DNA of 64,000 nucleotides from NCBI GenBank assembly GCA_001643675.2, contig LSRY02000023.1, positions 992,001 to 1,056,000 on the forward strand. Reading direction: 5' to 3'. Source of the DNA: Monocercomonoides exilis PA203 (taxonomy: Eukaryota; Protista; Preaxostyla). Position 1 is the first letter of the stretch. Each line of letters begins with the position of its first letter. The translations under genes were made by a program, and so were the position numbers. The notes beneath the pieces were generated by a model. That model saw only the letters and a list, made by a program, of their open reading frames with translations, ran no database searches and had not been told where the DNA came from. Of this stretch, positions 550 to 58,672 are shown in pieces.

Positions 550-1780
550 ATAAAGAATGTACCAAGTTTTTTGATTATTAGCCTCTAAATATTTAAACAA
601 ATGTTGAATTCATTAAAATAACTACAAAAGCCAATGATGGATTAGAAAAAATAAACATAGGAATAATTATATAACAACAGTCCTTTTCAGTATTCTTGAG
701 TTAATATTTCATAACAAATATTATAACCAGAATATTTAGATATAACAAATGTGATTTCAAAAATAATTACACACATTTTACCAAAAAAAGGATGAAAAAC
801 AGGGAAAAAAAACAAAAAAAAAAAAAAAAAAGGGGGTGGGGGGGGGGGGGAGGGAATAAACAGACGATAGTGAAAACGGAAAGAGGCAACTGAAAGGATC
901 GCAGTTTTTTTCGTTTTATCCATGAATTAATTACAAAAAAATGCAATGTTAAGATTTTTCAAATGTGTTAGGTGAACAATTACGAATAGAAAAAAATCAA
1001 AAATGACTAAATGATTTTTTATTCACATCTGAATTTTCATGGGTTTTTTTTCAAATCTCATTTCAAAATTTATAAAATTATCATCTTCCTCAACAATTGT
1101 GTATAGCACAAATATACATATTTGAAAACCTTTGAATTTCCTTTAATTGTTATTCAAGCAACTTTTTTAAATTTTTGTTGAAAAATTTCAATTAGGGTGT
1201 TTTTTTTTGAAATCATAAAAAAAGATCAAAAATCGAAAAAACAAAAACAATTGTGGTATTTATTGATCAAAGACAAAATTTGATTTTTTGCAAGTGAAAA
1301 GCAATTTTTCTGTGATAAATAATTGTTTTATTGCTATATTCAAAAAAGCAAACCTATTTGACATTTTTAATGAAAAAGAATTCACCAAAAATATTAAAAG
1401 AATATATTACGCACTCATCAAAAAGGAAATTGAAGTTTCCAGACTTTATAAACAGTTCTTATAAATGAAAAATAATATTGATAGATATTAATATATAAAA
1501 TTGGTTTGTTCAAAATGGTATGCAATGCGTTTTAAATTAATTGATGTGAAACTTCATCACAAAGTTCCTGTCATTGCTGCGCAGTTCAACGACTTATTAT
1601 AACAATGAACGAAACGGCAGCGAAACAACAATGGACGATGACAATGGAGTCAATTCCACTTTTCTTTCCTTATTATTCTTATGAAATGATATTCAAGCAT
1701 TCTTCTTCATCCGCTGCCCATCTTTCTTCTGTTTTTGCTCCACTTCATCTGAATCCCCCATTTGAAAATGCTGCTCATGT

Positions 1781-3270
1781 GGGTGATTTTTTTTGATATC
1801 ATAAAAAATTCCGAAGTTTGATCTAAAATATTTTTCATTAAGGGTGGGGTTGAAAAGGAAATATTTTTGTCAAATTATGCGAAAATAAAGTTTTAAATAT
1901 TATTATAATAGATTATTTGTTGATTTTAATTTGTTTCCAATAGTTTTTATTTCAAATATCGAAAAATAAAAATTATTTATTAAAAAAAAACCGAAAATTT
2001 GATGAACCTAATAAAACATAAGTTAACTGATTTCCAAAACATGATAACAATAATTATAATAATGTTAAACATCAATTTCATATTCAAATATATGAAACAT
2101 ATTGTAATTGAAAAGGAAAAAAAATTGATTTGTTGAAATAGAAAATTGCAAATTGAATCAATGAATTTCCACAGATCTGGCGGCTTACTAACATATCGTC
2201 CTTTCTAATAGCCTTTTCTCCTTTTAATGTTTCTTCTTTTCTCGAAAAGAAGAGGTTTTTGTTTGTTTCATAAATCCAACTACTTCTTTAGAAATTATCA
2301 TCTCAAATTCCCTTCCCAATCCCTTCATCCTGGGCACTTTCCATATGAATTCGCTCTCCCAACTCGATGGTCAGCCTGCATAACGAGATATAAAGCTTTC
2401 ATTCATTTTCATTCTTTTCCACCTCCTGCCTTGAAAACGACACAAAAACATTCAAAAGGCAAATATTCATGTAAAGAAAAATAAATAAACGCCAAACTGC
2501 CCTTCGACTGTTTTTTTCCAGAATGCATATCTCCACAACAATCATCATTCAAAAAATCAATCTCTTCATTTCAGCCTCAGAATGGTCAAATTGCAGCATG
2601 GAATGCATCTCCATAAAACACATCGTGTATCTCACTGGAGTGTCTTCTCAGGCTGTACACATTGTGGTGGATGTTCAGAGGTGTTTTTTTCTGTTTTTGG
2701 CATGATCATCTCCTTTAATAATATTCTCAACCACCCAAAACAGTATTTGATGTTTATCTCATCAACACCAGGCTCAGGAGGGATATGGAGCAAAGAAGAG
2801 ATGGAAGAATATTTTTTGTGGCAGGGGGTGGGAGTTGAGTGTTTTTTTGAATGTTAATGTTTCATGAGGGGTTTTTGAATGAAAGAAAATCTGAGACAAG
2901 GGGGTGGCGAAGAGGAAGTGGAGATTTTGAGCAGATAATATAGTAAATATATAGAGAAGTTGCTGGGGATGATGAAGAAGGTGATTATTGTTGATGGGAG
3001 AAATGGATTTTGAAAAAAAGGAAAAGAGGGCAAAGGCGGGAAAGAAGAAGAATATTCTGAAGTGTTTGATTGGGAGAGGGGTAATTTTTGAGAGGAAAAG
3101 ATTATTTGGAAGAGACTGCGAAAGATGAAGAAAAGGAGAGGATTGATATTTTCTGATGATTTTGGGGGTTGAATGGAAGATGAAAATGGAAAAGAAAAGG
3201 AAATTGAGAGATATTTTCATTTTCAATTTTTGAAGAGAAAGGAGAAGAATTTGCAAAAGAAAATTAATTT
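1781..3270. repeat. Inverted homology block 1 (pairs with ~11990-13270 and 14830-15003)
   Basis: ORF 2582-2857(+) IISFNNILNHPKQYLMFISSTPGSGGIWSKEEMEE vs 12263-12541(-) IFSFNNILNHIKQCLMFISSTPCTGGIWGREEMEE; ~150 bp terminal match between 1781-1936 and the reverse complement of ~14845-15003. Confidence 0.85.
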
Positions 3271-4419
3271 ATTTGAAGAAATACTGCCACATTAATTTGC
3301 ATCAGTCTCTTTTGCGCAATATAAGCGATAGCGAATTTCTACTCTTACAGAAATCAACTTATCGAAAAAAAAATATTTAGTCCAATCACGACTTCGTACA
3401 AATTATTTTCAACTTCTTGAATTTCGTAAGACTGATTTCACATTTTTCAATTGCTTCTTCTTCTTTGCCTTCTTTCACATTCATCTTTGTTGATCCTCTT
3501 ACTTCCTGCTGGATCATAGAATCGAACCAATTGTAGATTATCTTGTCTTTCTTCCGGATCATGAAAGTTATTGGAATATGAGAGTCTGTTTCGATGACAC
3601 TCACGAATCATTTTTTGGAGAGCTATTCGGATTACAACATTCGTTTTCTGAGCCATCAACTGGAGTTATTGCATGTGTGATGAGAATATTTTTTAAAAAA
3701 ATGTTTTTAAGGACTTCCATTTTGACTATTATTTTGTGTTTGTGTGTGCGCTTGCTGTTTGTACTGTTGTGACCAGAAGAATTTGAAAGCATGTGCTTCT
3801 TCGTTGTGTTCTGAATTGGAAGGACGCTTCAAACTATTTCTTGGGACTTATGATAATTACCCCGTGGATAGAGAAAACTTGGAGTGGTTTGCATTTTTGT
3901 CATTTAATTTTAACTGATATTTTTGTCAACTCGTTTGTTATTTCTGTTGCTATTTTCTGTATTTTTGCGGTGCTTGGCAAACAACAAGCTTTTCACTTCA
4001 ACAACACAGGCTTCAGTCATTTGTTGGGCGTGAACTATCTGGCTTCTTCAGCCTTGCAGGTGCTCGGCATGCTGTGTCATCAGCCTCTTTGCAATTGATC
4101 GGATCAGAGGCTCCAGCAATCTCCATTGCAGAGCAAGAGAGGCGGTTTATTGAGTCGCTGGGGAAGCGGCAGGAAACACATACAGCCAACGATCACCGCT
4201 TTCCAGCACAAATTCCTGCTGAGTTACCACTCCCTTATGCAGCATGCCCTCCTCACTTACCATCCGCACAGCCTCGCTCTGATAGCATGGGCAGCTCATT
4301 GGCTGGGCAAGACAAGACAGACACTTCTCTTTCAGCTGCCAGAGATAGAATATCTGACTCTGTTCATATCCTGCAGATTCCTTAATCTTCAAACAGATCG
4401 TCATGTTCCTCTCCCTCTC

Positions 4420-5870
4420 CCTTTTCTTCTTCTTCTTCTTCTTCTTCTTCTTCTTCTTCTTCTTTTTCTTCTTCTTCTTCTTCTTTTTCTTTTTCTACTT
4501 TTTCTTCTTCACATCCTCCTCTTATTTCTTTATTCTCATCATCTTCATCTCCATCAATGCATTCTGCAGATTCGCTGAATGTGCATTTGAACTGTTTTCC
4601 TCTTCCCCAGAGGCGCATTCCGCTCTGCTTCAGCACTTCGTACGGCTTCCGCGCTCCGGCTGTGCTGAACAGTGTGAATGAGGCGAATGGGCATCGAATG
4701 AGAAATGGCAGTGGAAGAGGGAAGGAGCTTCAAGGCACATTGCGTTCATCAGCTCGCTTTATGACGCCGCCAAGGAGCAAAGAGCGAGGAGTTCGCGATC
4801 AAATGAAAGAGGCAAAGAGAGCGGAGTACAATGGCAAGATGAATGCGGTGCAGAATAAAGGGAGACGACGGGAAAAGTCAAAGGCGAAGATGCAGACGAA
4901 CGAGAAAGACGTATTTTGCACATCGCAAATTGACTCTTTCGACACAATACAAGAACAGGCAGCAATAGAAAGGAGGAGGAGGGACAGGGGAAGGGAAAGA
5001 GAATTAAATATCATCAGAAAATTTGCCTATTCGATAGTGCACTCTCATCTACTCGTCCGAATTCTCAAAATACCACAGCCTCATCAACATTTGCTACTTC
5101 CTCTTTTTATCCATTGACATGCACTAAGTTGTTTGTCACTTCTGTTGTTGTGGGAAATCCACCAAAGCCATTCACTCCATCATCTCCCACCGCGGACTCC
5201 TCTTCGATAATACAGAAGTCCCTCTGCAAATCTTACACAAGCTCCGCCTATTTATCGAACATATCTTCTTTGCATGCATCTTCAACTATTTCTTCATTCT
5301 CGCTGTCGATTCCCTGTGCGGTTCTCTGGAAGAGCAGATTGGGCAATGCATGTGTATTTGCAAGCAGCATGTAAGCGACGAGGGATGTGTTTGAGCCGCA
5401 GAGCATCCTTCTGAACTGTGCAGCGTATGTGGCTAGCCAGGGGATTCAGGTGGGTGGTGAGGAGGAGAAGAAGAAGGAGAAGAAGAAGGATGAGAAGAGG
5501 AATGCATATAAGTTTGTTAGTTACAAAGATGAAAAGGGATTGTTGTATCTGACAGATAAATGCGTCGATAATGAGAAAAATGAAGAAGAGGAAGAAAAAG
5601 ATGGATTTGGCAGAGATATTAGAAAGGTTCAGAAAGATAGGGGCTCAAAAGAAAAAATAGAATGAGATAAAAGGAAGAATAAGCCTGTAACGATTCTAAC
5701 CACGCTTTGCTCAGATTTTCTGCCTGAAATCAAAAATCGAAGAAGGATTCAGCGACAGAACATCGAAACACCATTCGCTTTCTCAACATTTGCCTCTGCA
5801 AGCACATTAACTTCTTTCACTTCTTCTTCATTTCCAACTTCATCATCATCATTTTCTTCTTCTCCTCCTC
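4420..5870 (+). pseudogene. Captured decayed Ser-rich gene fragment; inverted homology block 2 (pairs with ~10110-11560)
   Basis: VFEPQSILLNCAAYVASQGIQVGGE (5387,+) vs VFEPQSILLNYAEYVASQGIRVGGE (10072-10818,-); frames broken by stops in both copies. Confidence 0.75.
4422..4510. repeat. (CTT)n microsatellite
   Basis: Directly visible CTT tandem tract. Confidence 0.95.
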
Positions 5871-6239
5871 TTCCTCCCAAACCCTGCCATTCATCAAGCA
5901 CAGCTTGGGGGGTTCGTTCAAAGTGAAGCGGCAGAATGTGATTGATCTATGTACCAGTGTCGTTTGTAGCGCTTTTCTGTCGATGGACGTTCAACCTTAC
6001 CTGCGCTGTGCGTTTCCTGTTGTACAGTTAATGGTCTGCGGCTTCGACGACATCTGCAGGCTGAGGGGACTAAACGCAATGACCCACATGGTGAACCAGA
6101 ATTGTATGGAAATTTTGAATTTTTCTGTAAAATAAAATATATTTCATTCATTGTTTCATTTATTTTTTTTTACCTGTATTTTGCGTTTCAAATATTTATC
6201 TTAATCTAAATTTTTTTGTTCACTCTCAAATGATGAATA

Positions 6240-7480
6240 GTTACGATTGTGGACTAATGGCAATGATTTTTCAATCGTCTTGCAAAGCAATAAAGACTAT
6301 TTGCTGAATGATGCTGTTGCAAAGCAATTGATCAGATTCATGAGGTTTGTCAGAAAATATTTATTGAGATTTTATTCACAAGTTTTTCTTTCTTTTTTCT
6401 TTTTTATCAAATTCTTTTTCTTCTTCATTTTTACACCCACTTTTTCGCTCGTTCGTTTCATTATACAAAAATACGCAAATATATTCACATTCAGTTTCCG
6501 ATGGTATCCTCTTATCTCTTCTTCTCTTCTTTGACCAACAAATTCATCACCAACGGTGAAGTGTTCCACTTTTCATTTCTGCACCACGGCATTCTCCAGC
6601 CCATCCACCGCCTGCTGCACTCGCCGCGCGCTGAATACAGCGGCAAGGCCTCCTCCAACCTTCTCTCGCTATCTAGCAAGACGTTAAGCTGTTTGCCAGC
6701 TCGCTTGACAAGGCGCTGTTTAACGAGCTTGTCGAGCTGATGTACTCACCACAGGCGATTGTGCGGAACAACACGTAGGAAATCATCGAGGTGCTTGCAG
6801 AAGGAAGAGGGCTGGCAGAAGAAGGAGTTGGAGAGGGAAAACGAGATGAAGGATATGGTGGAATGCCACGGAGGGGATATGATGGAAGTGTGATGTTTGG
6901 GGATACGAAGGAGAAGAGAAACGAGAAGGATAAAGAAGCGAACAATGAGCCAACAGTTACGAAGGAAGAGCTGCTGCGCCGTTTGCTGAGCTGGGGCGTT
7001 GGTCGAATCTTGTTGGCAAACTGGCTTCACCAACGGCGACTGACATAGCGAAAATAATAACTGCTGGTGCTTTGCTTAATCTGTATGCACCTGTTGGGAA
7101 AAAGAGGAACAGAAGAAGATACGGAGGATGATGATGATGAAGAGGATGAAGAAAAGGAGAGTGTAACGAAAGAGATGAAGAAGAAGAAGAAGAAGATTGG
7201 TGTTCATGTCCGTCTTCTCCTCGCACACAAGGTCATTCGCCCACTTTGTCTCAACTGCGTTCTTCCCTGTACTAACCTTTGTTGCAGATTCCAATGATTG
7301 CCTCAGTACTAATTTTATGCCAAACCTATCCCACAATTTCATGCCCCACCCCCTGCCGGAAGAACGCACGCAGCTTCTCCACTTCAGCAGAAGGCAGTGC
7401 AAAACAGCCACATCACAACATATTCCAGTGAGCACAGCAGAGCAACCATATCTGAGTCACTGAGTGCGCTCTTCAACAAC
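6240..7480 (+). pseudogene. Probable captured host gene fragment of unknown identity inside element B
   Basis: GC-richer coding-like stretch with broken frames (ORFs at 6501, 6791, 7067), preceded by a T-rich GT...CAG intron-like segment (~6345-6494). Confidence 0.35.
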
Positions 7481-10109
7481 AAGAATGATTTTTTTCTTTC
7501 AGTATCGTATTTGAAAGAGGGTTATATCAATCCCTCAACCATTTGCTCCTTCTCCTTCATTCCCTTCCTCTTCTTCTTCTCCCAAGCCGCAACTTATTCC
7601 ACAATCTTAACTCATGTTCATATACAGCGCTCACAGAACAGCAAATTGAACAGAACTTGTCAAAAAAAAAGAGGAGTCGATGAAGCTCAACCCAATCAAT
7701 TCTGTAAGCGAACATGGGTGAGAGCAGTAGAAAGGGAAGGGAAAAGATAAAGTGTTCAGAACGTGTCAAACTCCATAAGGGAGGGAAGAACTGCGCATGC
7801 CATTGTTTAATTGCTGCTGATGCTGAGAGCAGAAGAGAGAAAAGGGGGCAGATTTAAAGAAGAGCTGAAGAAAAACAGTTTTGTCTCTCTAAATGGGTAG
7901 CTCGTGGAGAAAAGATACAGTTGCAATTGGGGGAGATGAGAGAGATGATGGAGAGAGAGTGAAATGAAGAGGAAGCAAAAACGAAAGAAAAGGATGATCA
8001 AGAGAAAGAGGAAGATGATGATGAAAGAGGGAAAGAAATGGCATAAACAAAAAACGAATGATGGTTAAGGCGAATTCAATGTTGATTTCTACACAGAGCA
8101 GCAAGAGCAGGAACTATGGAAAAGAACGCAGTTTACGAAATGAGATTTTAAAAAATGTCGAGCAGAAATGACAGGAAACGATGTAATGAATCGAAAAAAA
8201 AATTAAAACTGTATTTTTAATGAAGAATAAAAAGAGAAGTGAAGGAGTTGAGTCAATTATTTTTATTAATTGCAGTTTCCTGAATAACACAATTTTCGTT
8301 TGCCGAATCTGTTGAGTTGTTCAGCGGATAAGGGAATTTTTTAATGAGGTTTCAGCTGGATTAGTGAAAAGCACATTTCTTTTTCTACGGAAAAATAAAA
8401 ATTCACAAATTTGTTGCGTTTTTTTAAGTTCTTTAAATATTTTTTCCCTTTTATTGGCTTTGTTTAACATGTTAAGTATCTTTTTTTCCAGTCTAGATAT
8501 TTCTGTTGACCTTTTAAAGATAGACTTTTAATTTTTTTTTGAAACTTTATAAAAAAAAATTTTTTATCAAAACATTAAAAAGGTATGCTTTTTTTCATAT
8601 TAACAAATTAAACAAATATTTATTACAGAAATAAAAGCCAAATACTAATGAATAACCAATTTAACTCTTTGATCAATAAATACCAAAATAGATATTATTT
8701 TTTGATTTTTGATCTTTTTTTATGATAACAAAAAAAATCACCCATGTTGTCTTCTTTTATCTCCAATGTTTTCCAAATTAATCTTTCATAACACTGCTTA
8801 ATCACTTCTCAACGAAGAAAAAACTTGTTAATCTTTTTCTATAAAATCATTTCGTTCATTTTCTTTGTTTTATTCTCCTCTCAGCCAACTCAGTCTTCTT
8901 CAACCACATATTCATCACCAGTTTCAATTTTAACAACCTCAGCTAAATCCACCTCACTTCTCTCTCAAACCGCTTCTTCCTCAACTCCTTCAACAAATCC
9001 AACTGAAACATGAGCGGTTTCATCTTGGTACACAGAAACCAGTAAACTCCCTCTAGCGATATGATTTCCTTGAAGCAAAGATCAGCCTGTTCCGTTTGAT
9101 TGAAGATGCGAACAAATGAAAAAGAAGAAAAAGAAAAAGAAGAAGGAGAAGAAGGAAAAGTGAAAAACATATTTTGCCAATAGATATGAAAGAAATATTA
9201 TAGGCGGTTCATTTAACTGAAAATGACAAACAGATTGACTAGTGATGATGCGGGAAGAGTGGTATCCAAGTGAATACTTCAATTTTTGAGCTTACAAAAA
9301 CATCGTCTTCCTCATTATTCTCATTAAATGTTCCGATTTTTCAGATATTTGATGCATCTTCACTCGTCTCTTTCAGAATATTCGTATTGAACAAAAGAAA
9401 ATCCAAGTTATTCTCGAAATTCGACAGATGTTTTTCTTCCATTTCTTTTATTCGTTCTTCAACTGGAACAGCATGCCTGTCTGCTTCGCCATTCAGGAGG
9501 CGAAGAAGCGAAGAGAAAAAGGTGACAGGAGATGATAAGCCATCTTCATCTTCATCAACAGCATCTGTTATTGATCATTCGGATGCATCGGTCTTGTCAG
9601 CAACATATACGTTAGCAGCAGAAACTGAAAATATCGAAAGGCGGCTGAGGTGAATTTGAGTAGAATGCAGCTGTCGCTGCTGCTGTTGCCACGGGTATAT
9701 GATGTGGTAATTTGCAATATGCTGAGTGGGGTTGTTGCGCATCCCTGTGATGTGGCGCTTTGGAGATGCTTTATGTTTTGCAGGTGATGCGGATTCTTTC
9801 GTTTGTTGCTTCGATGGGAACGAAATCTGAGGCTAAGTATCCTTTTTCGCATTGGATGCGAATGCGTTCTTTGAGGTAATAATCTGTTTATCCCTTAACT
9901 GCTTCCGTCTGCGATAGCGTTGATAGAGTTTTTATCACTGTAGCCAAAGCGTTTTGTTACTAAGATCGACGACGATGCGATTTGGTAAGGGATTACACAA
10001 TCTTATGCAAGGAAGAATCTGAGGAGAAGGCGATGAAGAAAGTGGGGTTGAAAATGGAGGCTGTGGTTCTATCACCAAAACCTATTACGCCAGCAGAACT
10101 TGAGGAGTG

Positions 10110-11560
10110 AGAAGAGGCAGAAGAGAATAAGGAGGAAAAAGATGATGAGAAGGAAGAAGAAGAAGAAAGAAGAAATGGGAAATGAAGAAGAAGTGAATGA
10201 AGATGATGTACTTGCAGACGCAAATGTTGAGAAAGTGAATGGTGTTTCAATAATTTGCTGCTGAATCCTTTTTCGATTTTTGATTTCAGGCAGAAAATAT
10301 GAGCAAAGCGTGGTCAGAATCGTTACAGGCTTATTCTTCTCTTTTGTTGTTTTCTTCTTTTCTTTCGCTCCTCTTTCTTTCTGAGCCTTTCTAATGACTT
10401 TGTCAAATCCATCTTTTTCTTCCTCTTCTTCATTTTTCTCATTATCGATGCATTTATCTGTCAGACACAACGATCCCTTTTCATCTTTATCACTCACAAA
10501 CTCATTTGCACTCCTCTTCTCCTCCTTCCTCTCTTCCTTCCTCTCCTTCTCCCCACCCACCCGAATCCCCTGACTAGCCACATACTCTGCATAGTTCAGA
10601 AGGATGCTCTGTGGCTCAAACACATCGCTAGTCGCTGATACGCTGCTGCTTGCAAACACACCAGCATTGCCCAATCTGCTCTTCCCGAGAATCGCACGAG
10701 GGATCGGCACAGTTGCAAGCGGTGGAAGCGAGAAGGAAGTAATAAAAGAAGGAGAGGAAGAAGAAGAAAAAGAGGAAGAAGACATGTTTGATAAAGAGGC
10801 AGAGCTTGGGCTAGTCATGTCGAAGGACTTCCGCGTGACTGAAAAGAAGTATGTGACGGGAGATGATGAAGTGGATGGCTATGGCGAAGTTCCAACAAGA
10901 ACAGAAAGGGCTGACAATTGTGTGTGTGGCAAGGGAGAAAAATGAGGAGAAGCAAATTTTGAGGAGGCTGTGATGTTTTGAGTGTGCAGCTGGGCAGATG
11001 AGAGTGTGCTGCCGAACGAGTAAAATGTTTGCTGCTGTTCATCATTTTCATCACCTCCTTCTTCTCTTCCCCTGTCCCTCCTTCTCCTTTCTGTTGCTTC
11101 CTGTGGAAGCCTTGTGTTTAATGCATCAATTTGTGATGTGCAAAACTCGTCTTTCTCCTTCTTCTTCGTCTTCGCCTTTGGCTCTTCCTGCTGTCTCCCT
11201 ATCCTCTGCTCTGCGCTCAATTTGCTTCTGAAATCCGCCTTCTTTGCCTCTTTCATTTGATCGCACACTCCTCGCTCTTTGCTCCTTGGGGGCGTAATAA
11301 AGTGAGTGGATTTTTGAGATGTGCTTGCAGCCCCTTCCCCTTCCCACTCCCATTTCTCTTCTCATTTCCGTTCATCCCATTCAGGAGAGCTTGTGTGCTG
11401 AAGAAGAACGAGCTCTTTAAGAAGAGCAAGATGTGCCGCTGTAGAAGAGGAAAGCCGTTCAAATTCATAACCTGAAATCCAACAGAACATATCGACAGTG
11501 ATGATTATGAAGAGAATTAAGTTAAAGAAGGAAGATGAAGAAGAAGAAGAAGAAGAGGCA
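10110..11560 (-). pseudogene. Element A copy of the captured Ser-rich gene fragment
   Basis: ORFs 10072-10818, 10879-11268 and 11253-11468 are homologous to 4557-5860 on the opposite strand. Confidence 0.75.
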
Positions 11561-13279
11561 ATATTTGACTGAAGGAGATTTTGTGTGTTTTTGGCTATGC
11601 AGTTCATAACAGGCGTGCTTGTCGTTAAATAAGTAGGTGAATTGCGAGAAGGCGAATTTTGTGTTTGCAAACCGAAAAATGATGAAGATGATTGATTGAT
11701 TGAAGGAGGGTTATCAGAAGACGACGAAGAAGAAGAAGACGAAGAAGAAAAACGGGTTGAGAAATGCAAAAACAGTTGAACAACATTTATGATGTTGAGA
11801 ATAATATGTATGAAGTTGTTGATTGGCCAAAAGGGCTCACTTGCTGTATAAACTTCAGATTGGTTAGAATAAATTCAATCACAAAATTTGTGACGAACAG
11901 ATTGTGAAAATCAATCAAGTTGGATTTTTCAAAGTCAATTGAATTTCTTTTTGCGATTTCCTCTCCTTTCCCCTGAAAAATAGAAAATATTAATATCCCT
12001 CTATTGATTTTCCTTTCCATTCCCCTCTTCCATTCAGCTCATGAACTTCTCATTAAATATCAATCCCTTCCTTTTCTTCATCTTTCCCATTCTCTTCCAT
12101 AAAATCTTTTCTTCTCATAAAAACACACTTCTTTCAAGCCTCAACATTTCTCAATTTTCCTCTTCTCATCGGCTTTCACCCTCTTTTCCTTTTTTCAAAA
12201 TCCATATCTCCAATCCAATAATCACCTTCTTTATCATCCACAGCTACTTCTCTACATATTTTCTACATTTTCTTCTCAAAATCTCCACCTGCTCTTCTCC
12301 ACCTTTTTGTCTCAGAATTTCTTCTATTCAAAAGTCCCTCTCGAAATATTAACACAAAAGAACACTCAACTCCCGCCCTCTCCCACAAATAATCCTCTTC
12401 CATCTCTTCTCTGCCCCATATCCCTCCTGTGCATGGTGTTGATGAGATAAACATCAAACATTGCTTTATGTGGTTGAGAATATTATTAAAGGAGAAGATC
12501 ATGGCTGAAACAGAAAAAACACATCTGCACATCCACCACAATGTGTACGGGCTGAGAAGACCCTTCGGTGAGATATACGATGTATTTTGTGGAGATGCAT
12601 TCTTTGTTGCATTTTGACCATTCTGAGGCTGAAATGAAGAGATTGATTTATTCTGAATGATGATGGCTGTGGAAATGTGGCTGTTTGGCGAAAAACAATC
12701 GAAGCGCAGTTTGGCGTTTATTTGTTTTTCTATATTTGAATATTAACCTGTTGAATGTTTTTGTGTTGTTTTCAGGGCAGGAGGTGGAAAAGAATGAAAA
12801 TGAATAAAATTTGGATTTCTCATTATGCAGGGTGACTATGGAGTTGAGAGAGTGAATACACATGGAAAGTGCCCAGAGCGAAGGGATTGGGAAGTGAATT
12901 GGAGATGATATTTTTGCAAAAAATAGTTTTCGGATATTGAGTGTGGAATTGAAAAAAAAACACAAGTTACACATTTTTCAGAAGTGCAAGAAATAAAAGA
13001 AGTTGGAAGCGAAAATACTATTGGGAAAGATGACAAAACAGCTGATAAATCTGTTGAAATTCTATTGATTTTATTTTTTATTTGAAGATTATAGCTCCAA
13101 ATTTTATTTTGTTCATTTTCTCTTACATTATTAAACCAGTATTTTTATAAAAAATTGATTGATTACTTATTGTTTTAATTATTATCATGTTATATTAACG
13201 ATTGAACAAATATTTTATTCTGTTTTTTTCTGTATTGATATTTCGTGAATAATTTTTTATGTTTTTTTGAAAACAAGCA

Positions 13280-14828: not shown

Positions 14829-15350
14829 TAATAAAAACTATAAGAAACAAAATAAAATCAACAAATAATTAAAAACTATAATAATAAATGAAACAATGTT
14901 TTCGTATAATTTTTGAAAAGTTCTTTCTAATCAACCACACCCTTAATGAAAAAATAATTTGATCAAACGTCGGAATTTTTTATGATATCAAAAAAAATCA
15001 CCCATTTGGGGACAGACATTTTATAGAAATAAAACCCTGAAAAAGAAAAATGATAAATTAAACATTCAGCAAACACCAAAAAGTGCTGATGAATATTGAC
15101 TAATGAACACAAAGCCTTTTATATTGTTAATTGTCATGTTTATAGGTACACTTAAAGAAACCTTATGACGTGAAAACTTCAAAAGACTTTTAGAAGAACT
15201 AAAGAAAAGCTTTGTTGATAGCATCTGAAAGATCTTTTATTTTCACTTTAGTCACTGACAATTGAGACAAATTAATTCCTCAGCTGACATTTCCAGTCAA
15301 CAAATGAATTAAAAAAATCATCAGGAGTTTAATTAACAATAAAAAAATCT

Positions 15351-20645: not shown

Positions 20646-20923
20646 ATATATATTTGGCTCAGTGATTATATGCGATTGAAATTGAATGAAATATAGTTCA
20701 AAAATGTCGGAGCATCGAAAAATGTGATTAAAAACGAATGTGATTATATTTAACCTGATTATTTCTGGTTTTGACTGTATTTTGATTCATAAAAAATGAA
20801 GGAGATTTTCATTGAAATCATATCATTTTTTGTGGAATTGTTTTAAAAAGGTTTTTCGTCACTTTCGATATAATTTTCAAACAGATGATAAATGTTTCAG
20901 AATAATTTCAAAGGCCAAAGATA

Positions 20924-21319: not shown

Positions 21320-21449
21320 TAGATATCAAAATGTGCAGATTTGAAATTTGACAGAGTTTTCTCTTTTTTGTGTTCATCGATTAAAATTTAAAACACATAT
21401 TCAACCAGAAAATTTTTGCAGAAAAGATCTGATATCAAAAATAATCACA

Positions 21450-47671: not shown

Positions 47672-50066
47672 CCCCAGAAATATATTATGGTTTCACTGAA
47701 AAAGAAAAAAATATGTGTTTCATATTTGATCAAAGTGCAAAATAAAAACATCAAATTCAGATCATGAAGAAAGAAGGAGAAATACCTGTCGTTTGAAATG
47801 TAAGGTTTGCCTTTTCACAAAATTAATTCTATTCAATGTTCCATCGATTTTTCATCGCATCCATCTTTGTCTTCGAATCCAATGCTGTTTCTTTTTTCAT
47901 TTGTTATTCCTTGTGCTCTGTCTGAATCAAGCTTCTTTTCTGTTGATGGAGGTCATTTCATCTGCATGGCTGCCGTTTCGTCAAAACTTCTGAACAGAAC
48001 AGAAAAGAAAAGAAAAGAAAAGATGAAGATTTTGACGAATCCATCGGTTGAGTGGCATTTACATAATATTCCATTCAAAAAGAGAATGAAGATTCTTCAA
48101 CGCAGCTCAGAAGAAAGAATCGATTTCATCAGATCACTTTCGTTGTTGTCAAATATTCCGTTCAATTGGGAGATAGCATTTCCTGTTTTTTCTTCACGCA
48201 AAGCTGAATGCGAAGCAGAAAGAAAGAACGCGTAAATGGAGAGCAGAGACAGACAGAGAAGATCTGATGCAATGATGCGCTCACGCTCAGATCGTTGATA
48301 GTATTCTCTCCATTTTCACTTTTTCTGAAAACAGACAATTTGAGTCAACCAAAGTGCAAAGGAGAAAGAGCAAAAAGTATGTTCTGCTGTTCAACAAGAA
48401 AAAACACACCATTCATTTGAAACGACTCAACTTCATCGTTTTGACCAGTTTTCTCAAGTTCTCTGAATCAATTTTCCTGTTCTGAAATTTTTGTTGAGAA
48501 AAAAACAGAAATTTCAATGTTTAATTGTTATGAAAAAGAAATGGAACAGAAAGATTGAACATTGGATTTTCAAGCTCGATTGTTCATTTCAAAAGAATTG
48601 ATTTCGTTGAGACATATTGAGCAGCAAAGATGCAAATCTGGAACAAGAAAATTGCAAATGCAAGCCTTTGAAATTGGCTGATGTGTTCTTGTTGATTGTT
48701 CGTGTATTGCGCGATAAATATACAGATTTGTGAAGTCACTGGGCTTTTGAAGAAAATTGAACAATCGAAAGAAGCTTTTGATTTGAACTTTCTTCGCTTT
48801 GAAAAATATATTCAAATGAATTTTTTTGTTGGAGAAGAAGAAAAATACGAAGATGCAAATTCCGGCAAATGTTCTGCGTCTGTCCTCTGCATTGAATGAC
48901 CAAAAAAATAAAAGTCAACGAGAATAAGAAGATATCATCAAATAAAGCATTGAAACCTCTTCAAAAGCCAATAAATGAAGTGACACTGAAACGGAAGAAG
49001 AGCATCGAAAATTCAAATCTTCCAAAGTTGGATGTGAAGTCCAAATAATTTAGGCAACCCAGCAAGCTTTTTGAATGTTTTTTTAGCAAGTGTCTTTATG
49101 GAGCAAGATGGAATATATTTGGTGCAATTCTTATTTTGTTGTTTTCGAAAGAACATGGGCTGAAACAGAAGCTGTTGATCCTCATCGTTCTTGCTTCGGA
49201 AGCACAACCACGAAAAGCTGTTCTTCGCTTTCAAAAATCCACAAAACGCAGGTAAATTCTTTCAAAAGGTTGGGGCAGTTATCTCACTTCCATTGAGGAA
49301 GATAACTTCTGTTTCATTGTTTGGTATTGCTTCCTTTCCTTTTCATCTCGATAAATGCCTCTTCTTCAGCACAGTTGTAATTTAATTTGTCAAAAAACAC
49401 CAGAAACTGTCCTCATGACTTATGTTCTGAAAAAAAATGCTCCGTTTGGTCTGATGTTCGATTCCAGTCGAATTCCATCTTATTTTTCTTCTTTTTTTAT
49501 AAATCTATAAGTCGATTTTGTTTTCATCTCTTGTTCCGATTGAAAATAATGAATATTGCGCAACTTCATTTATTTCCCAATGTCTATACAATAATAAGCT
49601 CCATTCACATCGTATTGCTCTACAAAGCGGAGATTGGCCATTTCAATAATTATTCGGATTCCTGGGCTTTGGAGAGGATACAGATGGAAATATCTTCACA
49701 ACAAACAGAACAATAAAAATCACATACACTACGTCTTTTTCGCTATTAACAAAATTGTTGTATTCCCCCTGGCCATCCAATTGTCAAAAATAATCTGACA
49801 AAATTTCGTCGTTGGGAATGTCTTTTCGTTCATCCATGTCGAAACAGAAAATAATATTTCAAGTCCTGTCGTTAATGTTGATTCATCAATGTCTCATTTT
49901 GTGAAGAAATATTTGAAAAATATTAATTATTCTCACAAGAAGCCATTATAATTTTTTGTTGATTCATTCCTTTCTGAAAATGTAAAAACGAATGAGGAAG
50001 GCGTGAACGCACGTATTTTCATTGCAATTCTTATTTTTATTTTTCAAATATTTCTCCTCTCCAAGC

Positions 50067-51568
50067 ATGTTCTCGTTCAACGTGAACGTCCAAATGGTGC
50101 AGTTTTCAGAATACAAAGCTCGTCAGAAAATGCAGGCGAAAGATGGCACCCAAAAATTAATGAGTTTGCATTCATTGCTGCATTCGAATTCTTGCTGGTT
50201 GCATTTCTGTTTTTAAGATTTTTGTGATTATTTTTGTTCAGGGTCGTTTTCTGAAGTTGAACGGAGCAATGAGGAAGAGCAAAAAGCGAAAATTGAAGAA
50301 ATGAATGGGGTGATAGAAGAGATGAGCAAAGAGGAATTCTATTCCGTCTTCTCAGAAGACATGTTCAACAACATCAACAAAATGATGAAAAGAAAGAGAA
50401 TTAACGTTGAGAATGCGTGTTTGCAGCTGCTGAAGCACATTGGACATTTCAAAGTGCTGAAATGTGCGTTGATCCATGACTTTGCAGAATGCACTTTGAA
50501 TGGAAGACTTGAAACGATGATATCTGAAGAAGAAGAGAAGAAAGAAGAAAAAGACGAAAGGCTTCTTGTTGATGCTTGCGAAAGCTATCTTTTGCTGAAC
50601 GACAGATTCAATTCGTATTTGGTGTTGATTTGTATGCCTTGTCTTCTGAAGGCTGCATTGAACAAGAAGGAGAACGGGGAGACGCAAAAAGAGGTGGAAA
50701 TGGCATTGTTGGCTTTGAGCTACATTCACGAAAGATTTGTTTGAGAATCTCCTTTTTGTTTTTTTATTACATGATAGAAATTTTTTTCAACTTTTTTTTT
50801 TTTAATTTTTATTTTTGTTTGTTAAAGGAAATCCCAGAAGAATTGTTCTTCGACGAGATCAAAGAAATTGTGGAATACCATCATGAGCACCACAACCTCA
50901 CTCATCTTGCGTATGTTTCAGCTTGGAAATTTGCGATACGCAGATTGCGTTTCAATGAAAATTTGTACGATGCTGTTGCGAATGAACAGCATTTTGCGAA
51001 AGCAACAGGGAGAGAGCTGGAAGAGCTGGCAAAATGTGTGGATTGGACAGGCAAAAAGGAGAAAAAGGAAAGAGAAGAAGACTTTCTTTTGATGAGATGG
51101 CTAAAACGTTTGGGGATTTCTTTGGGAAATGCAAATTGTAGAATGAAGAGTATTACGGGGTTTGGGGGGGGGGGGGGGGCATTGTTGAAATATTCCGAGT
51201 TGGAAAGGAGAAATACCGAGAAATTTGGATGTGCAGCGAGGAACAGAAAATTTGAAGTTGATATGTTGATGAAAGGCGGAGCTCTTGATCTCATTTTGGA
51301 GGAGATTCAGGGGCTGACGTTGGATGACTATTTTTTGGAGAGCTATATGAAATGCCTTTTGGACATTTCGAGGCGATTGAAATTGAAGGATGATGACGAA
51401 GCTTGGGAAGCGAAAAGAAAGGCAACCATGATGGAGATACACGAAAAGCTGGAAGAAGAAGGATACGAAGATATCATCACATACTTTCATAAAAGATTGG
51501 ATTTTCTGAACAGAAACTATTTCAAAGAATTATCGTTGAATATTTCAGATTATTTTGTGAATTTTTGA
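50067..51568 (+). CDS. Spliced gene (or young pseudogene) of a multicopy helical/ARM-like repeat family; exons 50067-50163, 50242-50738, 50828-51568
   Basis: GT-AG T-rich introns 50164-50241 and 50739-50827 join ORFs 50022, 50301 and 50576 in frame; two homologues elsewhere in the window. Fold assignment is inference. Confidence 0.7.
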
Positions 51569-51613
51569 GGAAACACTTTGAATTTTGTCACTCATAATCT
51601 TTTCTTTTTCTTT

Positions 51614-51658
51614 TTCTATTTCTATTTCTATTTCTATTTCTATTTCTATTTCTATTTC
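51614..51658. repeat. (TCTATT)n microsatellite
   Basis: About 7 tandem units visible. Confidence 0.9.
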
Positions 51659-53699
51659 TTTTTTCTTTTTTCTCATTTCACAAAATCTAAAACAAGCAAT
51701 CATTTGAGGATAATTTTCTTTTTCTCTTTTTTCTTTTCAAGAATTTTCTTTGAATGAACCGAAAAACAATTGATGTTTTTACAAAATAAAAACTTATAAA
51801 GAAACAACTTGTCCTTTTTTTTTCTTTCAAATTTCACTCAAAGAAATGATTGAGCATTATTCATTGAGTTGAAATGAAAAAAAAAGTATACTCAAAAGAA
51901 TAAACAAATGACCAACATAAAAGTTATAAACATCCAAAAACTTGAAAAACTGTGTTGCTCCAGATTATTCGAAAATCCAAATTTTCCTGACAAAAATATG
52001 AAGAATAATGTGCAATCTCCATTTAAACAAAAGAAAATTGGCTCATGAAGTAATGACGGTTTGTCAGAAGAAACGTAAAAATGTGCTTTTGGAAATATCT
52101 CTGGTATTTGAAAAATAGTAATTACACCAAAAATTATTCAAAATCGAAAAACTTTCAACCAAAGTCGAAAAACTTTCAAACGAAATCGAAAATTATTATT
52201 CAAAGTCGGAAAACTTTCATTCAAAGTCGAAAATTATTATTCAAAGTCGAAAAAGTTGCAAACGAAATCGAAAAATTTTCAATCGAAATCGAAAAACTTT
52301 CAAGCAAAGTCGAAAGTTCGAAAAACTTCAAATTTTCAAAAAGATGACAAAAATCAATAAAAGTCAAACAAACATTGTGATTGTTAAAATATCAATGATA
52401 TTTGTTATTTTAATGATTTTTCATGTTTTTTCCGAAATTTTTCTTTGCTTTCTTTTGTCCAATTACAAAATTTATAAATATGAGAGAAATACTGACACAT
52501 TTTGATCTTATTTCAATTGAAAGAACACTGCTTTTCAAAAGATTTGTAAAAAATAATTACCCATATTTTTTCTCAATTAATGAAGAATGATGCACGCAAT
52601 ATTGGCTCTCTAATTTCGCGTTTTTCATATCAAAAAACTCATTTCTAATGGAAGGCAACAAATGTTATAGCTTTTGTTTATTGTTTATAACTGAGTTTAT
52701 TTTGGTTCGAAATCTTCAAAATTTGCAGAAATCAGCAACGCAAACATTGCAGATAATATTTCCGAAAACAAAAGAATATTATTTTTCTATTGTGGAATAC
52801 TTTTTATTAAACGGTTATTTTTTTGTGAAATTTTCGATTTGGGTAAATTTTTTTGAAAAGTTCCTCGAGTTTAATTCTATCCCACAAAAGATCACATTTG
52901 ATCAAAAAATGTTGATCATTCCGTTCCCATTATTGTTTTATTAATATTTCATATTGTCATTTTCTGAGTTTATTATTGAAAAATAAGATACAAGTTTGTT
53001 GATATCATATGAGATGTAAACTCTCGTTTCATATTTGATATTAAAAACAATCATTTTGTTGTTATTTGGAACATTCAAATGTTTTTGTTAATATTTGCCT
53101 TTTTCATTACATTAGTTTGAATATACATCTTGCTTTTTTGGATAATTACTCTTTTTTAATATCCTTGGTTGTTAGAAATTTTATAGAAAAAATTTGCTTG
53201 ATTTGGAATGGTTTTTTTTTTGAAATTTATGAACAAAAAAGACTTGACATTTCACATCTCAAAACATGTGAATGATGTTCATTCAGTTGTTTGCAAAGGA
53301 CAGTTTTTGATATGAAAATTATAATATATATAAATATGAATAACCAGCAAGTTAATAATTTAAAAACCTTGGAATTGTGAAAACAAGAAAAGAACACATT
53401 TTTCACTCGTTGAATCAAATCATGAATTGCATTCATATTCACTTTCGTTTCCATATTTATCTGACTTTTCAAAATACTTTTCTTCTTTCTTAAACGTGAT
53501 GTCCGTAGAAAGCATTCTCTATCTTTTTCCAACACTCGAAAATTGTGAGATTTTCTTTTCATGTTAATTTCACTGGAATGAAATACGAAGTTGTTACAGC
53601 TCCACCAATAAATATGCCCGAAAATGTGATTGAATTGACCAAAATTCTTCTTTTAGCAAACGAAAATCAGAAATTATCTCTTTGCTCTTCTTTAACTTC

Positions 53700-56600
53700 A
53701 TTTTCATCTTTTTCAGTACATGGAGTGAGGAAGTGAGCATTCAGATCTTTTCACAAAAGATGCGTATGCATTCATGCCAACAACTATCTGATTTATCCTT
53801 CGTTGATGCTATCTGTGATAATACTGTTGGTGTTGCGATCTCCGCTGTTAAGGCTTGCGATGGTGAAGATGAATGACGAAACGATGGGTCGAGGGGTTGT
53901 AGTGTGTGAAGCGGAGGAGATCATGGAGAAGGGGCTGAGGATGGATGATGTGGTTCTGTCGCCTGCGGCTATTGAGCTGGTGGTGCTGGAGGAGCGAAAA
54001 GAGTAAGAGGAAGGAAGAGAAGAAAAGAAGGAGAGTTACAAGATTGTGAAGCAGGAGATGAAGACGAGGTGTTCAGTATTCGCATGCTGTTGCAAAATAT
54101 CCAAGATGACAAGCGGATATAGAAGCCGAATAGCGCTCTAGCAGAGCTGATGTAGGAGAATGACAAAATCAATATGATGCTGGAGAAGAAGATTCTAAAG
54201 TTGACCGAGAAGAACTTCACAGAGTTGAAGAAGCTGCAGGAACAGCTGCTGGAGACGCAGGATAAGACTGAATTTATTGATGAAAGGATAGAGAAAGAGA
54301 AAAAGTGCAAGACGCAGTTGTGTGTAGTGGTAAGTGTGGATAGCAATCTGTTGCCAGAGGGTCGGGTGTGTCGCTTGCCAAAACTTCATCGTTGGCCTCA
54401 GCAGGTCGCGGAATAGTTCTGTCTTCGGCTTTATTGATTCTGCCTTCAGGGCTGCATGAAAAGTTGTAGGAGAAGTTAATAGAGATCATCAAAAATGGAA
54501 GTGCTGCGATGCTTGGGCAAGATCCGAACAGGAAGGTTGTTACTGTGAAAGTCGGGAGCGAGATGAGTGTTGCATGAGAAGAAGACAGAGGTCGGGCTGA
54601 GAGTGCAGGAGGAAGTGGTGGAGGAGGCGAATGAGGAGTGGATGCAACAGTGCAGGAGAAAATGAACAAGATGGAGAAGGAAATGAAGATGCGGACAGTG
54701 ATGATGAAAGTGCAGGAGCAGACGATAAGCGAGCAGAAGGTGATGTTCAATAATGTGACTGAAAAGCTAAAGACGGGGCTAATACAAAGCGAGAAAAAGC
54801 AGAAGAAAATGAAGGTGTTATACGAAGAAATTGTGGAGAGGTAGGTTAAGCAGGCTAAGGAGCTGGAGGAGCAGGTTTTGCGGGGGGAGATTGGCGGTGG
54901 CAGGGAAGGAAGGGCAGAGGAGAAACGGGGGAGAAGGAAAGTTGGGGCAGGGAGGAGGAGGAGGAGGAGCAGCAGAAGCGGAGGGGGAGAATATAAGGAG
55001 GCATAGGAGGGGGAAAAGGCAGAAGAAAGAGATGCGGGTGCGGTGTATGGGATTCAGCTGTCGCTGCATGAGGATGCGAAGAGAGAGCGGGAAGACTGGA
55101 TGCCAACTGGGGCAGAGGAAGGGGCAGGGAAGGCGACTGTTGCGCAGCGGCTGAACATGCTTCTTGAGCAGACGACAGACAGCCGAGACCGGGAAGAGTC
55201 GGAGTGGCCAGTGTCTTCGTGTGGTGGAACGGGGGCAGGGCAGCCTGGGGAAGGTGGGGTGTCTTTGCCGGTGGGGCCGACAGCGATGGAGCGGCTGATG
55301 AGCGCAGTGTCGGGGTCGCTGGGGCAGGTGGCGTACGAAACGGCGCATGTGCATTGGATGCCGCACATATATAAGTTGCATATTCCGATTCAGCTGAGTC
55401 AGCAGTTTCCAAAGACAGGACTTAAGCAGAAGCAGGCGTGGACGCTGTCGAAGATTCAGGGGGTATATGGAGACAAGATATTGGCAGATTTGAGCGACTA
55501 CAGAGCTTGCCGGGAAGGTGTGGTGCTTTCAATACAGGCCAAGAAGACTTTGAGAATATGTGATCGTGGGAGAAGTGCTCGGAGATATAGAAGAAAAATG
55601 TTGTGCTGATGGCAATGATCTGCTTGATGTAACTATTCCGAAAGGAATTTGCGGAGGTGCGGCTGTTAGGAAGCATGTTCCGCAGGAGTTTTCCGAAGGC
55701 GAGCTGTCGTTCTTCCTGTACTGCTACACGGTTCTGTTTGAAAGCATTAAGACGTGGCAAGCTGTGGAAAAAACGAAAACTTCCTGATGGTATTGTTCAA
55801 GGTGTATTAGAATGCATCAGCACGGTGCTTGAAGTGCCGTCGGAGAATAAGATCAAGATGTCTTTTGGGGAGTTTGATGGGGTGAAGTCGGAGAATGGGG
55901 AGTTCGACGCATCTGTGTTTCTTGGATAGCTGTTGAATTACTACCGGGCAGAGGCAGTGAAGCGGAAGGAGGAGATGAAGAAGCTGCATGGTGTGATATG
56001 CAGTTGCGATATATTGACTTTATCATCAGGCACAGTGTTCAGAGAGATCACGTACTCTGAGCTGGAGTCTCTTCTGCGTGCGCGCTATCCGCAGATGCAA
56101 CAGGCGCTGTCGCAACAATCCTTCTGAGATGCATCCCATCTGTCGAGGTGCTTTCTGCCATCGTTTGCGTCTGTGCTGGAGGCGTGCTAGCCTAACAACT
56201 TCATTGCGCTATTCCTGCGACTGCAAGACATGCTTGTTTCAACCGATAGACAAGTGTTTCTATCACCTTTATAGAACAGTGCAGCTGCGGAGACGGTGAA
56301 ATGGCACCTTGTGCTGCTGAAGCCTGCACTGTACGACCTTTGTATGTGCTTTCGGAGCTATCTGCAGGGATAGGGTTGAAGCTGTGCGCGAACGCTGTAT
56401 AGTAGGCGGTGGGGAAGAAAGAATGGCGGAGGGCGCTGTTTCGAATGGCGCGGCTGCTGGTGGAGCTGGTGGGGCTGCAGCTGGGGAGGAACGAGGTGGG
56501 AGTTTTATTTTCTTTGGTCCGCTTCCGCTGGGCATGTAGTGCGTGGTGAAGATTCATGAGGCAATAATGTTGTTGAAGGAGGGATAAGAAGGCTATGCCT
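53700..56600 (+). pseudogene. Decayed coiled-coil-rich gene captured in E1 (unidentified)
   Basis: GC-rich coding-like island with successive fragments (54174, 54638, 55043, 55560, 55933) separated by stops and frameshifts. Confidence 0.55.
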
Positions 56601-56929
56601 TTCCAACTGCTTTGTCGGAATTGCCATTATTAATGTTATCTTCTTTTCCTTTTTAATTTTCTTCCTGCCTCTTTTCTTTCTCTTCTTTTTCTTCAAATCT
56701 TTAACACTCTGTTATTTTGGAATCTCCATTTTTCTTCCCAATTTGCTTTTGTTCCATCCAACAGCTCATTTTCCCAAAATTCTCCTTTAATAATTCACAT
56801 CAATTTTCTTTCAAAGTATATTTTGAAAGAAACAAATATTTTATCAATCTTTTTTATGCGTTTTTTCTCAATAAATACTTCTAAAAAAAATGTTTGAAAT
56901 GCAGGAAATGAAGGAGTTAAAGAAGTTTT

Positions 56930-57773
56930 TTCTGAATTTCTTGAACAATTATTGAATGAGGAGATTTCAACAGAAATTATTACAGAATCAGAATCTTGTA
57001 TCACAATGTTGTATCCTTTTAATAGCTTCACATCATCAGCTACAACCCAATTAAATGTAACTTCTTTGCTTTGTCCAATTTCAATGATATCTGATGTTGC
57101 CTCAATATGCTCTAATTTCACATTCATCAACGAAATCTGATCCCCACGAAGCACGAATGAAGGCTTGTAGAATGAAAGCATTGTTATCGAGCAGTTATCA
57201 ACATGCAGAACTTTATTTTCGATGGTTAACAATGTTGGATTGAGAATAACAGATTCAATATTTTCTGATTGGACAACCGAAGAAAAATAAACAGATGAAA
57301 GAGAAAGTTGTCCGTTTGTTTCATGAATGATTGAATTGCCTGAATATGAAAACGATTTCCCAAAATTGAATTTCAATCTTTCAATTCGAATATTCTCTGT
57401 GGTTGTGATAAGGCTTCCCGCATTGCTGACAATCGTTAAGTTCAGATTGATCAGAGCGGTTGAGGGAGATTTCAACGAGTGAATGCTAACATTTTGCAAA
57501 CTGCATTATCCATTGATGATGGTTTCCTCCGATATCAATAGTTGCGAATATGATGAAGGAATGATGTGTTGAACTCCAACATCCAATGAATAACAGGGAG
57601 CACTCAACTCTCCACATTGTTTGCTATCTGCGTGATTGTCTGCAGTTATAGACACAAATATCGTCTCACTCTGGTATCTCATAACCCTCAGCAGAAGATA
57701 TACTTCACCAATAAACGAGTCGGTTGTGCATCCCCACATCGCCAGCTCTTTCTCAAAAGGTGCTCAGAAATCT
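56930..57773 (-). pseudogene. Internal ectodomain fragment of the receptor-pseudokinase family captured in E1
   Basis: WGCTTDSFIGEVYLLLRVMRYQSETIFVS...DSKQCGELSAPCYSLDVGVQHIIPSSYSQLLISEETII matches the 2584-aa protein (~42130-42975); no signal peptide, TM or tail. Confidence 0.9.
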
Positions 57774-58672
57774 GTAACACATTTGAAACACTAAAAAAGA
57801 AAGTGTCAAAATTAATTAAACATAAAGAAAAACAAATAGCAAACCATCAATTTTTTAAAATAATTTTGTTCACTCCAACTTGTGCAAGCTGTATTTGCTT
57901 CCATGAAAGTTGATATTCAATCTGAGTTTAAAAAAATTCTGATTAAGTTAAAACTTAAGTGATCATCAGAATATTTGTTTATTCCTTTAAAAAATCTAAA
58001 CAAACCATGAACAATTCATGAAGTTGCAAATGCAAAATAGTTCAACATAATAAAACTCTTTTTCATTGTGAAACAAATAATTAAATTTTGATCAAAAAAT
58101 CAGATATATAATTTTTTGTGACAAAATGTTTTTTCTCATTTTGAAGTTTGCAATGAACTGATAAGCATTATAGTGAATTTTTTCGTTTTTGATGAGAATA
58201 ATGGTAACGGAATGAACAATAATTAACTTCAATGGGTCAAATATTTGATCTGATGTCACTTTTCAAAAAAATTTTGCCATTTCGATTGAAAATTTTTCGA
58301 TTTCGTTTGCAACTTTTTCGACTTTGAATAATAATTTTCGACTTTGAATGAAACTTTTTCGACTTCGAATGAAAACTTTCGACTTTGAATGAAAGTTTTC
58401 CGACTTTGAATTATTTTTGGTGTATCTATCCACAACAAAGCAATGCATTTGAAATCAAAGTCTTTCTTCAAATTTTTTGGGGGAAAAACGTTTGAAAAAT
58501 TTTTTATTTAAATGCAAATTTATTATTTCAAACGCAAATTTTTTGATTTTGAATTTATACTGATTTGTTTCAAAATAAAAATTATCATAAACATTATAAA
58601 TTTTAAAATAAATTAAATATTAACAAATATGAAACACAAGATACGATAGAACAATTAAAAAGTTGAGGAAAA

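Follow-up and report, generated by a model that had tools for sequence, protein, structure and literature searches.

This locus raises the question of whether the DNA transposons of an oxymonad carry pieces of host genes and, if so, how those pieces came to lie between their ends. The window, by which we mean the whole stretch of DNA analysed, is 64,000 nucleotides long and belongs to Monocercomonoides exilis (LSRY02000023.1:992001-1056000, assembly GCA_001643675.2). An initial annotation had singled out six elements delimited by terminal inverted repeats (TIRs), designated A, B, E1, E2, the Merlin-like element and the hAT-like element, and had read all six as transposase-less carriers of host gene pieces. 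Their termini and flanks identified the six as genuine mobile units, bounded by inverted ends and flanked by target-site duplications (TSDs; the flanks of B matched at three of four positions). The annotated lack of a recognisable transposase was borne out as well, with no Pfam transposase domain found in any of 20 open reading frames (ORFs) scanned from inside the elements, ORFs shorter than 70 amino acids (aa) being left out. Pack-type transposons exist in this window. The span as a whole is probably a nest, several levels deep, of non-autonomous DNA transposons of the cut-and-paste kind, in which the gene cargo is old and inherited within transposon families. The nest appears to comprise at least four structural types: a GGGTG/Sola2-like group (A, B, an element N and two MITEs, or miniature inverted-repeat transposable elements), the TA-flanked E elements, the Merlin-like element and the hAT-like element. 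Comparisons were made with further sampled loci (designated L001 and so on; ~170 kb altogether) and with Logan contigs from M. exilis DNA runs.

E2 (52125-58422, flanks TA / TA) consists of its own parts at 52125-52840 and 58279-58422, interrupted by a 5.4-kb transposon, N (52841-58278, + strand). N is Sola2-like and has its own TIRs (left GGGTAAATTTTTTTGAAAAGT, right GGCAAAATTTTTTTGAAAAGT), a TSD of ATTT on both sides and arms that are similar to each other over ~100 nt. The related element E1 is continuous at N's insertion site with a single ATTT. A reading with T...A termini and an 8-bp TSD, TTTCGATT, was rejected for the window N because four other copies showed only 4-bp duplications. A second copy (L005 7473-15090) lies in the middle of a hairpin-shaped element, H, and is a symmetric long-arm variant without the gene cargo described below. 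Searching via short kinase-like ORFs yielded four more, at L006, L007 (7234-15971; TSD ATAT), L008 (7499-13254; TSD ATTT) and L009 (8638-14227; TSD ATTT). The L006 and L007 copies, on different contigs, were 96% identical over 5.3 kb with the similarity confined to the element, so the N family moved fairly recently. An uninterrupted H in the window (20922-21321, 400 bp, arms 76% complementary) served as the reference for the L005 site. The second H copy (L005 ~7010-7472 and 15083-15245) is split by N exactly at its centre, and the target context AATTT(T)CGAT(T/A)T is common to the two sites where N inserted, one in E2 and one in H.

The cargo of N is a piece of a receptor-kinase ectodomain (56921-57772, 852 bp, - strand) with two in-frame stops. 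It was 74% identical at the nucleotide level to positions 42119-42970 within a neighbouring 2584-aa receptor-kinase ORF and 73% identical to that kinase's paralogue, which is itself 92% identical to the neighbouring kinase. Being equally distant (73-74%) from both, the module was not captured locally. Homologues of the module lie internally in proteins of 1000-2900 aa. The module occupies the same position beside the same terminus in five of the six N copies, which lie on different contigs, the L005 copy being the one without it, and the presence of N plus module at five loci with different 4-bp TSDs shows that cargo and ends move together. Four of the five short kinase-module ORFs examined lie within N copies. 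A kinase-module fragment at L010 (9289-10139), annotated as a 343-aa gene and 75% identical to the N piece, has no N sequence nearby, and the module thus occurs outside N elements too. A database look-up of the 2700-aa kinase ORF gave no record.

The six module sequences aligned over 852 nt without a single gap. Pairs of lineages were all 70-76% identical, both transposon to transposon and transposon to host. The ratio of nonsynonymous to synonymous substitution rates (dN/dS) was 0.29-0.36 between N lineages, like that of the host paralogue pair (0.35), and 0.26-0.36 across N lineages and against host genes, with neutrality rejected (P = 2e-10, window versus L008). The young pair L006/L007 gave a dN/dS of 0.81, compatible with 1 (P = 0.57) and rejecting 0.33 (P = 0.011). 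These two copies have two stop codons in common, and the window copy has two different ones. A neutral recent pair combined with constrained differences between lineages indicates either that the slot has been refilled or converted from different functional paralogues, or that the ORF was once under selection. We tentatively suggest that the Sola2-like family may keep a fixed slot holding a kinase module that is overwritten repeatedly, through gene conversion or template switching, from various functional host paralogues, so that the transposons would sample and disseminate variants of the largest family of surface receptors in the genome. Similar slots in the Merlin-like and hAT-like elements would then amount to multi-superfamily module shuffling outside plants, a possibility to which we give less than even weight. 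The G+C-rich block of N at 54083-55670 was rejected as coding: all six frames were equally conserved, no protein-level match was found elsewhere in the window, and Pfam gave no match.

The hAT-like element (25313-28150, + strand) has a 17-nt perfect TIR (TAGCCCTGGGTGACGTG), an 8-bp TSD (CTCCAACC) on both sides and subterminal CACGTC/GACGTG motifs, and its 8-bp TSD with a short TIR agrees with the hAT superfamily. Between its ends lies a full-length pseudogene of an armadillo-like family (25803-27133) with at least five frameshifts, its frames 2, 3, 1, 2, 3 and 1 together spanning aa 1-424 of the family. The piece at 25825-27130 was 68% identical to 50248-51562, at the resident family gene MONOS_15728 (50301-51568, + strand). 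A 61-nt AT-rich spacer within the cargo (26315-26375), beginning with GTATTTG, falls at the exact position of the single 89-nt intron of the resident gene. This intron remnant at the family's intron position identifies the cargo as a DNA-level copy that is now a pseudogene, and it is the one cargo for which the claim of retained introns was upheld. The right subterminal region of the element was matched by 7-16 Logan contigs, and contigs ~90% alike spanned 26996-27719, covering the junction of cargo and non-cargo DNA. Within the sampled loci, searches by exact pattern and BLAST gave no match to the ends of the hAT-like, Merlin-like or E elements.

The DNA around the hAT-like element records its insertion. 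It splits a pogo-like transposase remnant (24439-28765, + strand) between the motifs LQP and CDNCVF, and removal of the hAT unit together with one TSD copy rejoins LQP|CDNCVF. One Logan contig links 25191 with 28152, as a pogo copy free of the hAT insertion would. Upstream of the split copy lies a second pogo-like remnant (22184-23392), which consists of two ORFs with a stop between them and gave a weak DDE_1 match (22184-22789; E = 0.022, Pfam).

The Merlin-like element (15351-17343) has 166-nt TIRs that are 97.6% identical and begin GGCGAG..., and it is flanked by a perfect 8-bp TSD (AAAAATCT). Terminal 5'-GG and a TSD of 8 or 9 bp define Merlin (PMC8101967), and the element shows both. Its cargo (16266-16745, - strand) is a decayed fragment corresponding to about aa 70-238 of the armadillo-like family, which it matches at the protein level in the window. 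In Monocercomonoides, Merlin has been reported with more than 100 copies in at least seven families, with 8-bp TSDs and GG termini (PMC8101967). The present element resembles these in its GG termini and perfect 8-bp TSD, in the same organism. It differs in its 166-nt TIRs, compared to 23-29 nt in most reported families (PMC8101967), and in having a host-family gene fragment as its interior and no ORF for DDE_Tnp_IS1595. That domain was absent from this copy, which contains no long ORF, and no autonomous partner was searched for.

The family from which both armadillo-like cargoes derive had at least 109 members in M. exilis in a protein search that used exon 2 of MONOS_15728 only, and the matches were M. 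exilis proteins only. In full-coverage alignments the members were 31-48% identical to the resident gene. They are predicted to form an armadillo/HEAT-like solenoid, and a Pfam scan of the members gave sub-threshold matches only. The resident gene does not lie between TIRs. It belongs to a 10.7-kb segmental duplication (40970-51737 / L001 551-11284; 87% identity, inverted, 125-145 kb apart on the same contig), which contains a receptor-kinase gene together with the armadillo-like family gene.

At the paralogous locus sampled as L001/L005, paralogues of these kinase and armadillo-like genes are followed by N-like DNA, as would be expected if no cargo were mobile and resident pseudogenes simply lay between unrelated solo transposon ends. 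The repeat-rich genome, with ~46% of the M. exilis assembly made up of repeats, mostly unclassified and overlapping the tyrosine-kinase family (PMC8767320), would suit such an arrangement. The N-like DNA at L001/L005 proved, however, to be itself a TIR-bounded N copy inside H, and the candidate of resident syntenic DNA between solo ends was rejected. The rejoined pogo motif and the contig joining 25191 to 28152, the five N-plus-module loci with different TSDs, the recurrence of A with perfect TSDs (below) and the perfect 8-bp TSD of the Merlin-like element all speak against solo ends, and we give this explanation almost no credence.

A reverse direction of transfer deserves somewhat more weight, although we still regard it as unlikely. 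The armadillo-like family and the kinase module would originally have been transposon genes, and the host families would have grown by domestication and spread with no capture at all. The dN/dS of ~0.3 between N lineages, the intact 317-aa ORF of the L008 copy and the location of four of five short kinase-module ORFs inside N copies would all agree with this, and the published repeat annotation overlaps the tyrosine-kinase family, ~35% of the assembly being "unclassified repeat" that overlaps this huge family (PMC8767320). However, the kinase module is internal to proteins 1000-2900 aa long, and the resident gene of the armadillo-like family is part of a segmental duplication and has no TIRs at its flanks. 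The module copies of the window N, L006 and L007 have stops and recent evolution has been neutral, and two unrelated types of element hold armadillo-like cargo, one a fragment and the other the whole gene.

Not every element of the nest holds a gene piece. E1 (13280-14828, flanks CA / TA) has TIRs of CACCAAAAAT... and ~30 subterminal copies of a ~20-nt repeat with the core TTTCGACTTTGAAT. E1 and E2 share these termini and the 20-nt subterminal repeat arrays, with 48 motif matches compared to 1.6 expected. Three empty sites, in A, L003 and L004, showed that E1 had added its own length plus 2 bp, in agreement with the TA target-site duplication of Tc1/mariner/pogo-type MITEs. The interior of E1 is made up of a 254-bp GGGTG-ended MITE (14036-14289, TSD ATAT / ATAT) plus AT-rich non-coding DNA, and E2 keeps only the right end of the MITE that is whole in E1. 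E1 and E2 captured nothing; both contain other transposons. They resemble nested MITEs and Stowaway/Tourist-type nests in being TA-flanked, transposase-less and repeat-rich with inserted transposons as their extra DNA, and they differ in being unusually long (1.5 kb), in their ~30 subterminal 20-nt repeats and in one of them hosting a 5.4-kb insertion.

A second pair, A and B, likewise proved to be something other than individual captures. A (1781-8743, 6963 bp, + strand; TSD ATGT / ATGT) has GGGTG ends and lies in opposite orientation inside B (1195-15003, - strand), which also has GGGTG ends, is flanked by ATTA / ATTT and has both its sibling A and E1 inserted in it. A terminal motif scan gave the consensus GGGTG(A/T)TTTTTTTTGA(A/T)ATC for the termini of both, and the inverted similarity between them was 75-83%. 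Given the asymmetry of the two end types, what looks like a 13-kb inverted duplication is A inserted in reverse into its sibling B. A full collinear copy of A was present at L003 (7358-13472, 77-85% identical to A, TSD ATAT / ATAT) and a shorter copy of the family at L004 (7329-11670, TSD ATGT / ATGT), which additionally contains a partial third copy. The L003 copy sits within a further nest, of small GGGTG-ended MITEs that form an inverted pair (7336-7357, 13473-13735, 16717-16997). As the L003 and L004 copies cover the interior of A, nearly all of that interior is family sequence. Copy-specific DNA is confined to 3476-4400 in A (925 bp, bounded by CTT-rich tracts) and to 1383-1780 and 8748-10138 in B. 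The ORF at 10072-10818 in B is annotated as a gene of 248 aa and has 23 paralogues, 57-88% identical, on many contigs. A and B are therefore sibling copies of a multi-copy family. No host parent for their interior was identified in the paralogue and sampled-locus comparisons, and no Pfam domain was found in any A/B ORF scanned. The ORF obtained by computationally joining B on either side of the A insertion was uninformative. Gene models for an "uncharacterized protein" lie wholly within A/B at 10072-10818, 10879-11256, 4557-5665, 3594-4385 and 6863-7048.

AT-rich 4-bp TSDs (AWWT, ATAT, ATTT) are a signature of Sola2 (PMC3627910), and the GGGTG-ended group was called Sola2-like because of such TSDs alone. 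They were found at eight termini pairs, comprising in the window ATGT (A), ATAT (the MITE at 14036-14289) and ATTT (N), and at other loci ATAT (L003, L007), ATGT (L004) and ATTT (L008, L009). The terminal motif scan together with a listing of flanks added a small GGGTG-ended MITE at 514-772 (259 bp) with a mutated right terminus. A solo GGGTG-type right terminus (ATGTGATTATTTTTGATATC) lies at 21431-21450, just past H; its partner was not identified.

These results bear directly on the original proposal that six unrelated TIR elements had each captured gene pieces independently, partly from nearby genes, as an active system driving family expansion. Three cargo pieces (56921-57772, 25825-27130 and 16266-16745) do match genes of the window, cargo occurs in three structural types and one cargo has an intron remnant. 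The matches, however, reflect similarity at the level of families and not local capture, the N piece being equidistant from the neighbouring kinase and its paralogue, and the hAT-like and Merlin-like cargoes having only ~27-72% protein identity to family members, with frameshifts. The cargo of E2 is a nested transposon that has a TIR and TSD of its own and recurs elsewhere, E1 contains a MITE only, the A/B interior recurs in L003, L004 and 23 paralogues, and no intact cargo gene was seen in the window. We consider independent captures on this scale highly improbable. What stands of the proposal is that the hAT-like element, the Merlin-like element and N (within E2) hold gene cargo, and that hAT-like, Merlin-like and Sola2-like carriers contain coding sequence of host families copied at the DNA level. 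The claim is not supported for the remaining elements, given the nested transposons of E1 and E2 and the family-wide interior of A and B with no identified parent, and nothing in our analysis shows that the elements drive gene-family expansion or domain shuffling. Recurrence of paired ends with their cargo at independent loci, named in the initial annotation as a check, was found for N and the A/B family and in part for the hAT-like element.

The cargo was 30-75% diverged from any gene found, frameshifted or interrupted by stop codons, and inherited by whole transposon families. In the sequence of events that we favour, gene pieces would have been acquired long ago at the DNA level. The nesting shows that A and, in addition, E1 inserted into B, that E1 and E2 descend from an element in which a GGGTG MITE was already present, that N entered E2 later, and that the hAT-like element landed in a pogo-like transposase gene. 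Various functional paralogues of the host may later have replaced or converted the module of N, because dN/dS is ~0.3 between N lineages while the young pair is neutral. Transposases encoded at other genomic sites would have mobilised the elements in trans.

Several observations weigh against an old, family-inherited nest with module replacement. The ~170 kb of sampled loci yielded neither an autonomous partner with matching TIRs nor further E-family or Merlin-like copies. The Logan contigs show presence and not copy number, the superfamily names refer to termini and TSD length only, and the flanks of B agree at only three of four positions. No source was identified for the A-specific (3476-4400) and B-specific (1383-1780, 8748-10138) DNA or for the G+C-rich block of N. 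Selection that once acted on an ORF carried by the transposon would give the same dN/dS signal, and the L008 module retains an open 317-aa ORF. At the protein level the tree of the module was an unresolved star, and the approximately unbiased (AU) test failed to reject a single N origin (P = 0.247), so that the argument for module swapping comes from dN/dS alone.

Gene-carrying TIR transposons are well described from plants, and in rice and maize every main TIR superfamily includes Pack-TYPE elements (PMC8903248). The M. exilis elements share with Pack-MULE, Pack-CACTA, Pack-hAT, Pack-PIF and Pack-Mariner elements (PMC8903248, PMC6379663) a non-autonomous TIR structure that has TSDs and lacks a transposase, an interior with host coding sequence, introns included, copied at the DNA level, several superfamilies per genome and cargo inherited by clusters of elements. 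They differ in their oxymonad host, in having Sola2-like and Merlin-like carriers besides hAT-like ones and in drawing cargo from two lineage-specific multigene families; in addition, one module occupies a fixed place family-wide with signs of replacement, and the elements are known here from sequence alone. Gene carriage across several superfamilies is already known in kind; the new features are the oxymonad host, the Sola2-like and Merlin-like carriers and the fixed, apparently replaceable module. Among described Sola2 transposons, the chimeric Sola2-Fanzor elements of dictyostelids have swapped 3' halves, with 4-bp AT-rich Sola2 TSDs, AWWT (PMC3627910). The present group is similar in its 4-bp TSDs (ATGT/ATAT/ATTT), short TIRs and shared end region with differing internal segments. 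It differs in that no copy seen encodes a Sola2 transposase, and the Sola2-like label is drawn from TSDs only, the GGGTG termini not having been compared with described Sola2 ends. A literature search on M. exilis transposable elements returned only the assembly paper and the Merlin survey, with no dedicated paper.

Copying of kinase modules by N-like elements would explain part of the overlap between unclassified repeats and the tyrosine-kinase family, and some of the numerous short gene models named "uncharacterized protein" would likewise be accounted for by such elements. The published gene count is inflated by transposon ORFs, with 24 annotated genes attributable to the A/B interior ORF alone. 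The elements would extend gene-carrying TIR transposons to a distant eukaryote, and to superfamilies for which we found no such description. The selection signature of the cargo offers a concrete test of exchange between transposons and a rapidly evolving receptor family.

Two further features were observed. At L006, an 81-bp tandem repeat array with units ~99% identical (1-2074) lies within a called gene of 3599 aa. In the window, a 5.9-kb palindrome (36051-41931) that is 98% identical arises from the convergent 3' ends of two giant kinase ORFs.

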